Sequence record: MG655270.1
DNA: 64,000 nucleotides
Strand: one strand, 5' to 3'
Position numbers and translations under genes: made by a program. This document shows, one piece after another, positions 2,610 through 44,557 of the stretch; position 1 is the first letter of the stretch, and every line of letters starts with the position of its first letter. The notes below the pieces were generated by a model, which was given only the letters and a program-made list of their open reading frames with translations, was not told the DNA's origin and did not search any database.

Positions 2610-3283
2610 CGTTTGCTGAAGCTGAACAGTATATTTACAGTCTCAGTCAAGACGGCGGGGTCTATAAACAAGGGTTCATCTTTGTGTTTGATCCCGAGTC
2701 GTGGGATAAGGTGAACAGGGCGTTGGATATCCTGGACAATAACCGCGGGATCTGGGGGAAGAACGTTGGACAGTTCACCACCGCCGGCATGACGTCCTAC
2801 GGGCCGGTGTCAGCGAGGCTTAAAGGGTATATCGTTATTGCCGTCCATTTCACGGGTGAGCGTAAGCTGTTCAATCCAGGGTATCTGCAGCATGTGTTGA
2901 ATACCGCCACCCATGAGTTGGTCCATGCTGCTCAGTTCGCTGTTCGGGCGCAGAGCTACCATGATCCGTTGATTGCTGTAGAACCACTGGCTTACCTGAC
3001 CGGTTGGTTAATGGAGAAATGGATTTATGCAGTGTGGGAGAAGTTTAACGTCACCATCTCAGTAACCCCTGCTACTACCGGTCCACTGTCGTACAACATC
3101 CTGTTTGACCTGTTGTATCGGTTCAATGAACAGCGGCTGGCGCACCGGATGGGTGATCTCACCATGACACAGATTCAGAGTGCTTTAGTTAGGGAGTCGA
3201 TTAACAGCTTGAATAACGTGGCAGTGGTAAACGATATCGGTTGGTCATCAACGACGTATCTTGATGGAGTTAACAAGAAATGA
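2606..3283 (+). CDS. Putative zinc metallopeptidase-like protein, HExxH paralog 2
   Basis: ATHELVH followed by EPLAYL; ATGA overlap with the previous ORF. Confidence 0.7.
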   Translation: MTFAEAEQYIYSLSQDGGVYKQGFIFVFDPESWDKVNRALDILDNNRGIWGKNVGQFTTAGMTSYGPVSARLKGYIVIAVHFTGERKLFNPGYLQHVLNTATHELVHAAQFAVRAQSYHDPLIAVEPLAYLTGWLMEKWIYAVWEKFNVTISVTPATTGPLSYNILFDLLYRFNEQRLAHRMGDLTMTQIQSALVRESINSLNNVAVVNDIGWSSTTYLDGVNKK

Positions 3284-3906
3284 AGATGCCGGTCAGTCAG
3301 TATGTAGATAAGTTTCTATTAAGGCTGTTCCCTTATCCGCGGCATTTTATCTTTGTCACCAGTGTTGCGGATTTTGATGCGGTGGTTACCGAACTGGCAC
3401 GTCGGCAGACTGCGGCTGGGATTAGCAATAAATGGCTGAGTCACAGAGGGCATTTCAAAGGGAATGGGATTTGTGCTTCGGGGAATCAGATCTGTGTATT
3501 AGGTGCGCTTTATGATACCGGCACGCAGCTCAGCCCAGCTAACATCGCCGGGACGATCGGTACCATGCAACATGAAATCCAACACATGTTACTGCATACC
3601 TGTGCGCAGATTGGTTATAACCCGATGCGCGAACACGAACCGTTTACGTATTTAACGAAGTGGGTGTTTGAGTTGTTCCTGGCGTTTATGCGTAATTACC
3701 ACGGCGTGATGATCACCGATGTGCAGCGGCAAGATACTGGTATGCTGAGTCGGTTGCAGAAGGGAGGGGCTTTTGAGTTACTGCACGCCCTGCCCGTTGA
3801 AAATGTTCGAGATTCATTAGCAAGAGAATCCCGTGCATTATTAAACAACGCGGTGGTCGTCAGCCCTATTGGCGCATCCCGTTCCACAACCTATTTCGAA
3901 TTATAA
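3280..3906 (+). CDS. Putative zinc metallopeptidase-like protein, HExxH paralog 3
   Basis: MQHEIQH followed by EPFTYL; ATGA overlap. Confidence 0.7.
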   Translation: MKMPVSQYVDKFLLRLFPYPRHFIFVTSVADFDAVVTELARRQTAAGISNKWLSHRGHFKGNGICASGNQICVLGALYDTGTQLSPANIAGTIGTMQHEIQHMLLHTCAQIGYNPMREHEPFTYLTKWVFELFLAFMRNYHGVMITDVQRQDTGMLSRLQKGGAFELLHALPVENVRDSLARESRALLNNAVVVSPIGASRSTTYFEL

Positions 3907-4721: not shown

Positions 4722-5423
4722 ATGAACGGTATGAAGATGATGATTGGTTCCCTGCCACTGAGCAGCATGATGGGTGGTAGTCGTTCAGACGCAGGGACTT
4801 TCAATCCTGCACCGCACGCTGCCCCTTTCCGCGCAGTTGGTGAGTACATCGCAGATGCGGCATTTGAGGATCGTGGGGTATTGGTTTCTGCAGACGGGAT
4901 CGTTGCTACTGTGCGCGCCAAAAAGATGACCTTCCAGGAAGCCGCAGATGCCCGCGGTGCAGCCACCGGACTGTATGCCATTATGTTCCCAGTCACTAAC
5001 GGGGCGAAAGACGATACTGTCGTGATCACCACTACCAGTCAGGATGTGTTGTTTAACTTACTGGCAGTTGAAGATCTCCCTGATGAACTGTTTGTGCAGT
5101 TTGGTCTGGCAACGAATGCCGCCGCGGTGAAAGCCATGACCAATGACAACAACGACCATATCCGGGTACTGTCCAATGCCGGCGGTATCGCCCCAAGCAA
5201 TACCTCACCGTCCCATTTGATTGTGGATAAGCAGCGCAATCTGATCATTGGTCATATTGTAAAAGAAGGTGATGATCAAGCAGACTTCAGTATCTTCGCC
5301 GCCTCACGTAAATCCAAATCATCACAGGACTACATTATCAACGTGAGTACCGATGATAGTGATATCATCAAGCATATCGTCCAGGCTACAGTGGAAGAGA
5401 TTGCACTGGGAGACGCGGTCTAG
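4722..5423 (+). CDS. Hypothetical protein
   Basis: 233-aa ORF with RBS AAGGG; colinear with its neighbours. Confidence 0.7.
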   Translation: MNGMKMMIGSLPLSSMMGGSRSDAGTFNPAPHAAPFRAVGEYIADAAFEDRGVLVSADGIVATVRAKKMTFQEAADARGAATGLYAIMFPVTNGAKDDTVVITTTSQDVLFNLLAVEDLPDELFVQFGLATNAAAVKAMTNDNNDHIRVLSNAGGIAPSNTSPSHLIVDKQRNLIIGHIVKEGDDQADFSIFAASRKSKSSQDYIINVSTDDSDIIKHIVQATVEEIALGDAV

Positions 5424-6898: not shown

Positions 6899-6927
6899 AA
6901 GGGACTTCGGTCCCTTTATTTTTTTTT
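6899..6927 (+). terminator. Canonical intrinsic terminator
   Basis: AAGGGAC-TTCG-GTCCCTT followed by a T tract. Confidence 0.85.
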
Positions 6928-9036: not shown

Positions 9037-9069
9037 GAGCTCACCCTAACCGGTGGGCTCTTTTTTTTT
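9037..9069 (+). terminator. Canonical intrinsic terminator closing the early cassette
   Basis: GAGCTCACC-CTAACC-GGTGGGCTC followed by T9. Confidence 0.85.
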
Positions 9070-9127
9070 GTCTTCTTTTTTTTTTGTTCGGGGATTATAT
9101 GTAGTCCATATTAGCTAAGAGGACATT

Positions 9128-32385: not shown

Positions 32386-32436
32386 CGGCATATAGGCCCT
32401 CCATTACGGAGGGCCTTTTATGACATCTTTTTTTTT
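32386..32436. terminator. Bidirectional hairpin at a convergent junction
   Basis: CGGCATAT-AGGCCCTCC-ATTAC-GGAGGGCCT-TTTATGAC followed by a T tract. Confidence 0.75.
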
Positions 32437-32447
32437 GGTTTACAGCG

Positions 32448-32825
32448 TTATACCAGGCGCTGAGTTAGCTGCGAACTATATTGAATAGCGTGATAGGTCG
32501 CAGGTTTCTCAAGCTGCTCGGTGCAGCGGTAGACCGGGGTCTTCATAAAAGGACAACCGGCATTCATTAATGCCTCACGGTTGCTGGGCGACTCATCAAC
32601 GCGAATCACCACATCCGTGGACTGGAAGCCAAAGACTTCCCGCTTCGTTGCAGTATATTCTGCATCCAGCACCACGATCTTACGGTTGATCACCAGCTTC
32701 ACGGCCACCGGGTATTTGATTACCAGGTCTGACCCTAAGCCCGCCAAGACAAACTTAATGACAAACTTCTTAAGTCCATTTAGCAACTGACTCTCACTGG
32801 CCCAACTTTTAACAATCTGCAGCAT
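32448..32825 (-). CDS. Hypothetical protein
   Basis: Last gene of the minus-strand operon; start taken at ATG 32825. Confidence 0.55.
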   Translation of the reverse strand: MLQIVKSWASESQLLNGLKKFVIKFVLAGLGSDLVIKYPVAVKLVINRKIVVLDAEYTATKREVFGFQSTDVVIRVDESPSNREALMNAGCPFMKTPVYRCTEQLEKPATYHAIQYSSQLTQRLV

Positions 32826-32900
32826 GTGTGTATTTCCACTCATATAAGGGGAAGTTAAGAAAAGCAACCTGAGGGCCCGTCCGTGATCCCTCATAATGTA

Positions 32901-33365
32901 TTACTTCATACCGTCCAACTGCTTTTGAAGTTCCTTTAACTGACGGCTTGCATCCGGCGTCTCGGCGTCATGATCTCTGATCGCTTCAATAAACGACTTC
33001 CGTTTGCAATAAGGATACTTCATCCATTTATCAAATGACAAACCAAATTTGCCCAAGATATCCGCACGCAGATATTCGAGCTCATACTTTCGATACCCAA
33101 CTAACGCCAGCGAGTCTTCCTGCTCGACCTGTAAGATTAACGAGAGCGGCGAGGTTTCCACGTTATGGTCAATAATCCCAAACGTGTCATCGTAAAGCTC
33201 TGTTAATCGAATTAGTGGATACTCCCAGTTCTCGGTAAGAAACGTGGGGTTTTCTAACGCGACATCCCAGGCATCGGACCGATCACTTTCGGACAGACCG
33301 AAATCCCAATGGATTAGATGTCGGCTTGATCGAACGTCTGATTCAGTGTATTCGTCATTAGGGTA
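32901..33365 (-). CDS. C-terminal extension frame reached by predicted -1 frameshift from the upstream gene (TAC-T/T4 gp51-like)
   Basis: The frame is open from 33413 to the stop at 32901 with no ATG before the last ~35 codons. It overlaps the U8 slippery site and contains ILGKFGLSFDKWMKYP. Confidence 0.6.
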   Translation of the reverse strand, partial: YPNDEYTESDVRSSRHLIHWDFGLSESDRSDAWDVALENPTFLTENWEYPLIRLTELYDDTFGIIDHNVETSPLSLILQVEQEDSLALVGYRKYELEYLRADILGKFGLSFDKWMKYPYCKRKSFIEAIRDHDAETPDASRQLKELQKQLDGMK

Positions 33366-34933
33366 AAAAAAACCCGTGCTACGTTCAGCGGGGTGTACGC
33401 AGGGAAGGTGTTGCTAACTAGCGGTTGACGCGCCTGGCAGTTCGGGCATTTCCAACGCGGTACTGCGACTACACCGACCGTTACCCGGTTGATGAACTTG
33501 TTCAGCTCTTCAAAGAACGGTTTACGCATATCCGGGGTTGCACTGAATTGCTTCAGCAGCAATGCCACGTCATCGGCCGACTCAACATAGTTGCCATCGT
33601 TGAACTCGATCTTAGTCACCCAGTGGGCGTAACCGCGCATGGAGGACAGCGCTGCCTGTTTGTTGATGTGCTGCTCACGCTGCTCGCGCGTCATGCTGTC
33701 GTTGAAGCTGTCGGTGATCGCTTGTTGAATGCCGTTGATCCAGGCATAACCCGCTGCATTCTTATCTTCGAGTGATGGCACCCGCAGATAGAACTTCACA
33801 TCTTTCACAGTGATGACATTGTCTTTCATCACTTCAAAGCCGGTCTGATAGGCAACGACCTGCTCAACGGTACGGCCGCTGAAGTGAGACATGTGCGCAC
33901 GCTGGGTTGGTGACAGACGATTGTTGTCAATGATCGACAGACGAGAGACGTTAACTTTCGCTGCTTCAACATGCACACACTTCTTCGGATCGGCGGCACA
34001 GGCAGTAACCATGTGGTAGCCAGACTTAAAGCGTGCGCCCAGGTAGGCGTTAGCGATCAGATCAAGATCCTGCTCTTTGATTAACGGCAGCAGGGTTTTC
34101 TTATCGGAGACACCGATGCTGCTGTCAGTGACCATACCCAGCAGGAAGTCAGTCATGTGCTTACGCACCACGACATCCAGGTTGTTAAACACCAGACCGT
34201 TGGTACGACGACCGAGGATCGCTTTCTCAGCCATGATGGCGGTTTGCATATCCACAAACTCATCATCACCGGCAATCAGCAACGTAACCCAGATACCAGA
34301 ATGTGGCAGCGGCAGATGGACATAGTCGCCCATGTTCATCACGCCACGAGCACGCATCACTGCCTGTGGACCGGTCAGCAGTTTAGTGCCTTCGGTACTG
34401 CGCTTCACTGGCGGGCGAGAAACACCCTGCACTTTGTTATTGTCGAGCAGAATACCCTGCAGCCACTGCGCACCATCTTGACGAATGGTCAGGTTCAGAC
34501 CAGAACGGTACGACAGGTTGGTGATGGCGTTACTGGCCAGGGATAGCCAGATCATCGCTTTATCAGCACCGTACAGACTGACGATCTCTTTTAAGATCTT
34601 CTTGTCTTCGGTGTTGGTGTCGATCTCATTGATCAACGCCGTCGCTGCATCGTAATCCTGATGCATGATAGACAGCACACCTTCCGTGCCGACATCCTCC
34701 ATGGAGTTCAGCTTTTCAATGATCGGGTTCTGATAGAGCGGATCGAACGCCTGCTCAACGGCTTCAGCTTCAGGTGCTTCAGCTTCGCCCTGTTGGCCGG
34801 TTTCTGCTGGCTCGGGATCGGTGCCAATAGTACCAGTAGTCGCCGGACGGCCTGGATCAACTTCAGGAATACCAGAGTGGTTTTCTTCAACAGGCTCTTG
34901 CTGTGACAGAATGGATGGGTTATCACCGGACAT
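33314..34933 (-). CDS. Baseplate hub/tail assembly chaperone-like protein (T4 gp26-like; phiKZ gp77-like)
   Basis: Acidic N-terminal extension; Cys pairs (CAADPKKC, WKCPNC); FYLRVPSL segment. Function is inferred. Confidence 0.55.
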   Translation of the reverse strand: MSGDNPSILSQQEPVEENHSGIPEVDPGRPATTGTIGTDPEPAETGQQGEAEAPEAEAVEQAFDPLYQNPIIEKLNSMEDVGTEGVLSIMHQDYDAATALINEIDTNTEDKKILKEIVSLYGADKAMIWLSLASNAITNLSYRSGLNLTIRQDGAQWLQGILLDNNKVQGVSRPPVKRSTEGTKLLTGPQAVMRARGVMNMGDYVHLPLPHSGIWVTLLIAGDDEFVDMQTAIMAEKAILGRRTNGLVFNNLDVVVRKHMTDFLLGMVTDSSIGVSDKKTLLPLIKEQDLDLIANAYLGARFKSGYHMVTACAADPKKCVHVEAAKVNVSRLSIIDNNRLSPTQRAHMSHFSGRTVEQVVAYQTGFEVMKDNVITVKDVKFYLRVPSLEDKNAAGYAWINGIQQAITDSFNDSMTREQREQHINKQAALSSMRGYAHWVTKIEFNDGNYVESADDVALLLKQFSATPDMRKPFFEELNKFINRVTVGVVAVPRWKCPNCQARQPLVSNTFPAYTPLNVARVFFTLMTNTLNQTFDQADI

Positions 34934-44505: not shown

Positions 44506-44557
44506 CAGCATAAGGAGAGGCCTCGCGCCTCTCCTGTTTATGCCGTCTTTTTTTTTT
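44506..44557. terminator. Bidirectional hairpin flanked by TTATGC(C/T)G on both strands
   Basis: CAGCATAA-GGAGAGGC-CTCGC-GCCTCTCC-TGT-TTATGCCG followed by a T tract. Confidence 0.75.

Follow-up and report, generated by a model that had tools for sequence, protein, structure and literature searches.

Comparative evidence for a probable −1 frameshift at a conserved U run in a core gene of phiKZ-like phages

Here, we examined a 64,000-nucleotide stretch of DNA (the window) from Erwinia phage vB_EamM_Mortimer (MG655270.1, genus Agricanvirus; 100% identity, with record coordinate = window coordinate + 186000). An earlier reading of this sequence alone, hereafter the original prediction, proposed that a −1 frameshift fuses the gene for a protein of 539 amino acids (aa), gp274, to a downstream reading frame that has no start codon at its beginning. 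Comparison of orthologous loci in the phiKZ-like group and beyond strongly supports this fusion, and the shift probably takes place by programmed −1 ribosomal frameshifting at a run of U residues, which would give a short product and a long product carrying a start-less conserved domain. The features of the locus in the window are as follows.

33314-34933, minus strand: zero-frame gene, GenBank gp274, 539 aa plus stop; PHROG 4585, function unknown.
33365-33372, minus strand: T8 run with the slippery heptamer T_TTT_TTT (33371-33365) in X_XXY_YYZ phase.
32901-33365, minus strand: −1 frame extension, 154 codons plus TAA; PHROG 13274/12109, function unknown.
33314-33365, minus strand: dual-frame overlap of 52 nt, encoding a 16-residue C-terminal tail and the stop in the zero frame, and the first 17 extension codons in the −1 frame.
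32901-33161, minus strand: annotated coding sequence (CDS) gp273, 86 aa from GTG, which is merely the tail of the −1 extension and begins past its Y-D-D-T-F-G motif.

The codons of gp274 at 33376-33362 read CGG GTT TTT TTT ACC, and the heptamer is followed by 16 sense codons and the stop codon TAA at 33316-33314, which confirms the in-phase T_TTT_TTT that had been placed 16 codons before the stop. The −1 frame was likewise found to be closed at 33416-33414 and then to contain no stop codon until TAA at 32903-32901, 154 codons past the slip position. A −1 slip at the T8 run, in which base 33365 would be read twice, gives a predicted product of 523 + 154 = 677 aa, the size (~677 aa) originally proposed. 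The earliest start codon of any kind in the −1 frame of Mortimer is GTG at 33161 (codon 68 of 154), and annotation is therefore restricted to the 86-aa gp273, which is all that GenBank and the open reading frame (ORF) lister call of this frame. The earliest ATG is codon 114 of 154, in line with the earlier statement that no ATG occurs until about the last 35 codons. The T8 run is the sole A/T homopolymer of at least 7 bases within a long stop-free stretch in the 64-kb window. It is present without change or indel in 16 of 16 Agricanvirus ray-type records (10 phages, several depositing laboratories), and the Phe-Phe pair at the run is invariant in protein alignments of the orthologues. Other runs, of T9-T10, lie outside long open frames (6919-6927, 9061-9069, 9076-9085, 32428-32436, and 44548-44557); at least two of these five are located between the ends of annotated genes, and therefore they are probably terminator tails.

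With the 539-aa protein as query, tblastn matched 221 phage records, comprising phiKZ-like phages plus some relatives. According to the PhiPA3 record and the core-genome paper, the orthologues of gp274 include phiKZ gp077, PhiPA3 gp074, 201phi2-1 gp136, EL gp47, and RAY gp267; the family corresponds to the Chimalliviridae core gene cg18, which is a "hypothetical protein" in the core-genome list. We surveyed the site in 32 distinct orthologous loci, taken from GenBank records and IMG/VR contigs and tabulated by script, among which the identity of the zero-frame protein (hereafter, the N-part) was as low as approximately 18-25%. The hosts of the surveyed phages were Erwinia, Salmonella, Proteus, Pseudomonas, Ralstonia, Klebsiella, Serratia, Cronobacter, Vibrio, and Bacillus, and the loci also included one sea-squirt phage and several metagenomic phages. 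The heptamer was U_UUU_UUU in 19 of the 32 loci, including phiKZ; U_UUU_UUC in 6 (SPN3US-like, Wellingtonvirus, CR5, two Vibrio phages, and one metagenomic phage); G_UUU_UUU in 5 (PhiPA3 and 201phi2-1 types); U_UUU_UUA in 1 (Bacillus phage AgentSmith); and A_CUU_UUU in 1 (Vibrio pVa-21). Its phase was the same in all 32 loci, with the same Phe-Phe (or Leu-Phe, Phe-Leu) pair throughout. In every locus, the zero-frame stop lay 8-36 codons past the site, whereas the −1 frame was open for approximately 150-180 codons and contained no stop from the run up to the conserved domain. In other words, the alignment of orthologues that had been suggested as a check showed that both the slippery run and the open −1 frame are kept in all lineages examined.

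When the 154-aa extension alone was used as a tblastn query, it matched Agricanvirus ray-type records at 99-100% identity, AH06 at 80%, Erwinia pEa_SNUABM_37 and 48 at 49%, Salmonella SA002 at 44%, and Proteus phage 10 at 40%. In SA002, pEa_SNUABM_37, and Proteus phage 10, the match started exactly 52 nt before the stop of the upstream gene, the same position as in Mortimer. The extensions of the surveyed loci form one alignable family; past a variable linker, they share motifs in a conserved domain of approximately 110-120 residues. Conservation likewise extends to the length and character of the zero-frame tail. One record, that of Enterobacteria phage SEGD1 (KU726251.1), contains the N-part and the extension in a single 795-aa ORF; therefore, the two can share one polypeptide. 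Its congener SPFM16 has the usual split at T_TTT_TTC, and the registers of SEGD1 and SPFM16 differ upstream of the run; the single ORF of SEGD1 would be explained either by an error in the sequence or by a constitutive fusion that occurs naturally.

Selection at the protein level was evident in the −1 frame from the zero-frame stop onward. Over the 40 codons past this stop, nonsynonymous divergence (dN) was far below synonymous divergence (dS) in 13 of 13 pairs (e.g., 0.13 vs. 0.69 and 0.10 vs. 1.19), resembling the remaining extension. Within the overlap, synonymous divergence was suppressed in all 13 pairs (dS 0-0.44), as would be expected of two coding frames. The codons at the site also departed from the usage of their own genes: elsewhere in the same genes, TTT accounted for 204 of 565 Phe codons (36%), and for only 7-12% in six loci, which still carry TTT TTT at the site. 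The fused form was absent among the 33 relatives of the N-part (all 485-633 aa) found in a search of 5.8 billion proteins. A repeated word-indexed protein search, run with an alignment, gave the same 13 proteins as the first such search and no further ones. An exhaustive HMMER scan of 1.84 billion representatives with the extension returned 13 relatives, all of them fragments of 72-186 aa with ragged N-termini, which is a signature of gene callers guessing starts. These data bear on the possibility that the split arose from miscounted bases in the homopolymer during sequencing, or from a frameshift mutation that became fixed and left the downstream frame as a dying remnant. Homopolymers are error-prone, and the SEGD1 record does show a single ORF; however, the 32 loci with the same frame relation come from many laboratories, sequencing platforms, and metagenomes, 16 records agree on the T8 run, purifying selection acts strongly on the downstream frame, and the zero-frame tail keeps its length and character. 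Taken together, the tests of conservation, codon choice, start codons, selection, and database forms exclude both error and decay, and we regard this explanation as extremely improbable.

We propose that two proteins are produced from one mRNA. The majority of ribosomes would stay in the zero frame up to the stop codon at 33316-33314 and release the 539-aa short form. A minority would slip back by one base with Phe-tRNAs on the UUU codons at 33370-33365, re-pair perfectly on U_UUU_UUU, and read 154 further codons in the −1 frame, giving a protein of approximately 677 aa. This long form would share its first 523 residues with the short form, and the last 16 residues of the latter would be replaced by the linker and the conserved domain of approximately 115 residues. 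The slipping agent is inferred to be the ribosome rather than the RNA polymerase. The long form is probably the minor product, given that the searches revealed no stimulatory structure and that heptamers made up of U alone are moderately shifty in E. coli.

Several observations weigh against this mechanism. Among the 32 loci, we found no conserved downstream RNA structure and no upstream Shine-Dalgarno-like element, the upstream sequences not being conserved. The 100 nt downstream of the site folded no better than shuffled sequences (single folds), the 45- and 70-nt downstream windows had a median folding percentile of approximately 0.55 relative to the gene background, and RNAalifold gave merely a weak hairpin 40 nt downstream, around the zero-frame stop and without real covariation. 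The pairing between GGGT and ACCC flanking the run, to which the original prediction had drawn attention, is present in Mortimer and AH06 but not conserved elsewhere. Because no stimulator was found, the efficiency may be low, and U_UUU_UUU is far less shift-prone than A_AAA_AAG in E. coli (PMC5009743). The proteomics of phage Churi at 15 min post infection shows the N-part only, the database used having held just the 45-aa tail of the extension. In phiKZ RNA sequencing (RNA-seq) data, the PHIKZ076.4 region is present at approximately five times the normalised level of PHIKZ077, co-varying across samples, and could represent a separate transcript of the distal part. At this locus (phiKZ NC_004629.1, 71442-73504), the excess of PHIKZ076.4 could stem from a 3′ fragment or from an internal promoter. 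In addition, an ATG overlaps the zero-frame stop in RP12, and the site is a pure T5-T8 homopolymer, on which a polymerase could also slip.

The homopolymer raises the possibility of transcriptional slippage, in which an RNA polymerase, probably the phage non-virion enzyme, adds one U in some transcripts and the same long protein results. A one-base insertion yields precisely the −1 frame, and UUUUUUU is under-represented in genes, an avoidance thought to be partly due to polymerase slippage (PMC4066793). However, the runs, which vary from T5 to T8 across the loci while the codon phase is fixed, are short for known sites, being T6 in five loci and also in several T_TTT_TTC loci, and T5 in Vibrio pVa-21. 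Slippage sites of bacterial polymerases are typically homopolymers of 9 or more. Moreover, the T6 loci do not use the available synonymous change in the preceding codon that would lengthen the run. In 26 of the 32 loci, the codon before the pair ends in T, whichever amino acid it encodes, and so lengthens the run at its 5′ side, whereas lengthening at the 3′ side occurs once; this pattern fits re-pairing in the P site better than run length alone. The U_UUU_UUY and U_UUU_UUA variants are classical ribosomal heptamers, and in E. coli, H_HH.U_UU.Y heptamers rank with the most efficient −1 motifs, and U_UU.C and U_UU.U with the top tetramers (PMC4066793). The fixed phase, the 5′ lengthening, and the classical heptamer variants thus all favour the ribosome over the polymerase as far as sequence patterns can tell, and transcriptional slippage seems rather unlikely to us.

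Two of the observations listed above, the RP12 ATG and the level of PHIKZ076.4 RNA above that of PHIKZ077, would also be explained if the downstream frame were a separate small gene, translated from an internal or non-canonical start or by termination-reinitiation, with the T run being merely a pair of conserved Phe codons. Annotators have called separate CDSs of 45-150 aa in this frame, and PhiPA3-type loci contain an ATG approximately 34 codons into it. The start, however, is not conserved in position: the first possible start codon of any kind varied from codon 8 to codon 101 among the loci, and in many lineages, including Mortimer, AH06, phiKZ, and AgentSmith, every possible start lies past the conserved Y-D-D-T-F-G-type motif. 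Purifying selection is already visible from the zero-frame stop onward, the synonymous sites are frozen in the overlap, TTT TTT is retained against codon preference, the −1 frame is open from the run to the domain in all 32 loci, and the N-termini of the called fragments are ragged. Based on codon choice, the scatter of starts, selection, and the database forms, independent initiation is unlikely as a general mechanism, with RP12, the PhiPA3-type loci, and phiKZ as possible exceptions, and we give it a lower probability than slippage of the polymerase.

The N-part and the extension had no match in Pfam, NCBIfam, or functional PHROGs, and PDB sequence searches with profiles of both parts found no relatives. 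An AlphaFold2 (AF2) model of the N-part built from a 31-sequence alignment reached a predicted local distance difference test (pLDDT) score of 75.9 and a predicted template modelling (pTM) score of 0.77; a model from a 12-sequence alignment was discarded (pLDDT 42.9). No fold match to this model was found in the PDB. When it was compared with BFVD using Foldseek, the matches beyond the orthologues were named "baseplate hub assembly protein, T4-like," "baseplate hub subunit," and "baseplate hub assembly chaperone." These hub-protein matches had a Foldseek probability of 1.0, E-values of 2e−6 to 7e−4, and target-normalised template modelling (TM) scores of 0.44-0.56 over approximately half of the protein, and other chaperone matches in BFVD appeared only at E > 0.7. 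Fourteen orthologues showed no match to T4-type baseplate hub assembly families in Pfam, NCBIfam, or PHROGs. The baseplate-hub/chaperone label given to the gene in the original prediction thus finds an echo in this moderate structural likeness and in a few database names, but not in any sequence family, and a T4 gp51/gp26-like assembly role for the N-part is a lead from the modelled fold only. The slip position falls inside the last helix of the model (residues 518-536), and therefore the short and long products differ in that structural element.

Four cysteines of the 539-aa protein, C312, C319, C496, and C499, are invariant or nearly so among the orthologues, and the last two form a CxxC pair just before the slip site; their conservation is suggestive of a metal site of the Cys4 kind, and the CxxC pair is missing from RP12-type proteins. 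Mass spectrometry at 15 min post infection identified the Churi orthologue, gp256, which is listed as non-structural (non-virion). The text of the phiKZ virion atlas does not mention gp77, and PDB sequences do not include it. The products are thus apparently located outside the virion. Antisense oligomers against PHIKZ077 were flagged as toxic to the host (PMC12571901) and are therefore uninformative on the function of the gene. In Churi (OM718002.1, locus 3191-3334, minus strand), a 47-aa CDS that lies immediately beyond the extension, on the other strand, carries the annotation "baseplate hub protein," a name that is probably spurious.

The arrangement resembles those of lambda G/GT, P2 E/E+E′, and the Mu-type chaperones. 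As in these systems, a −1 slip would occur close to the 3′ end of a morphogenesis-type phage gene, normal termination would yield the short product, and the long product would combine the shared N-terminus with a C-terminal domain without a start codon; furthermore, it is the arrangement rather than the sequence that is conserved among very divergent phages. The two products of lambda G/GT are made at approximately 30:1 and neither is found in the virion (PMC5009743), and the products considered here are apparently non-virion as well, judging from the Churi listing and the phiKZ atlas text. In contrast, neither part showed homology to tail-chaperone families in Pfam, NCBIfam, or functional PHROGs. 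Lambda G/GT is located between the tail tube and tape-measure genes, whereas gp274 is not; its annotated neighbours encode RNA polymerase subunits, a helicase, a DNA polymerase, and hypothetical proteins, with no tail module. Lambda G is approximately 140 aa long, far smaller than the 539-aa upstream part of gp274, and the lambda slippery site is G_GGA_AAG, unlike the U_UUU_UUY found here. Of the G/GT-like event in the tail module that had originally been proposed, the predicted two-product arrangement is supported, whereas the gene neighbourhood and the lack of chaperone homology do not agree with it, and the likeness to lambda G/GT is reasonably taken as an analogy, not a demonstrated relationship.

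The N-part shares a modelled fold likeness with the T4-type hub assembly proteins gp51 and gp26, without a match to a sequence profile or a solved structure. T4 gp51 is a non-virion assembly catalyst, which fits the non-virion status reported for the phiKZ-type orthologue, and we know of no frameshift extension in gp51 or gp26 proteins. E. coli dnaX (tau/gamma) offers a further parallel, in that slippage by −1 at a homopolymeric heptamer determines how much is made of each of two products sharing an N-terminus; however, the shifted product of dnaX is the shorter one and strong stimulators flank its site, whereas in gp274 it would be the longer one and the searches for a stimulator were negative. 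By analogy with lambda G/GT, the short and long forms may constitute a non-virion assembly factor maintained at a fixed short:long ratio, in which the extension would tether an N-part with a T4 gp51/gp26-like fold to a partner. More tentatively, cg18 could be the jumbo-phage counterpart of G/GT: it would encode a hub-assembly factor of the T4 gp51 kind that is absent from the virion and subject to a recoding switch across the family, and the rare long form would tether the factor to a structural partner and so fix the stoichiometry for the initiation of the baseplate or tail. Such a switch would be the first recoding event to be described in nucleus-forming phages. Because no stimulator is visible in cis, the efficiency might perhaps be tuned in trans by phage ribosome-binding proteins. 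We consider this extended scenario possible but doubtful.

The region past the extension also contains several features. A hairpin followed by a T-rich tract lies directly past the extension stop (approximately 32858-32891, minus strand) and not past the zero-frame stop. The same hairpin occurs in AH06 (locus L002, approximately 4743-4790), where the stem sequence is different and the pairing is retained, and a block of more than 20 nt, identical in Mortimer and AH06, follows it. This region looks like a terminator or promoter, which would fit co-transcription of the extension. A promoter and terminator scan gave nothing beyond the expectation from shuffled sequences. The next downstream gene (32448-32894, minus strand) is open for 148 aa from an ATG, whereas GenBank gp272 starts later and is 125 aa long; its PHROG match spans residues 24-148. 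In RAY, Desertfox, Simmy50, Deimos-Minion, Bosolaphorus, and MadMel, whose genomes are near-identical, a second CDS is annotated under the T-run region. The −1 frame of RAY is open farther upstream than that of Mortimer, which is closed by the stop at 33416-33414, and the longer calls (PHROG 13274, 182 positions) probably use a non-conserved upstream start.

None of the approximately 25 annotated records of gp274-family loci contains a joined CDS, and the phiKZ RefSeq record leaves an unannotated gap of 218 nt between PHIKZ077 and the 80-aa PHIKZ076.4. A literature search, by which most subscription journals were not covered, found no programmed frameshift in phiKZ, Chimalliviridae, or SPN3US, returning only unrelated mutational frameshifts, and for 201phi2-1 gp136 the sole match was the same-numbered PhiPA3 capsid protein. 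The original prediction, whose author knew of no description in Chimalliviridae, agrees with what was found in the literature covered. We regard the locus as a probable −1 recoding site of standard type, lying in a gene that is new to this class and shared by the whole family. If it is real, every phiKZ-like genome encodes an unannotated protein of approximately 650-840 aa, and the 221 phage records matched by the N-part, among them those of the model phages phiKZ, PhiPA3, 201phi2-1, RAY, and SPN3US, would be affected. The short downstream CDSs, such as PHIKZ076.4, Mortimer gp273, and Churi gp257, would then be artefacts of start-codon guessing, and knock-down or localisation work on cg18 would have to reckon with two products. 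Furthermore, conserved frameshifts that set the ratio of products in phage assembly factors would reach a new gene family and the jumbo myophages.

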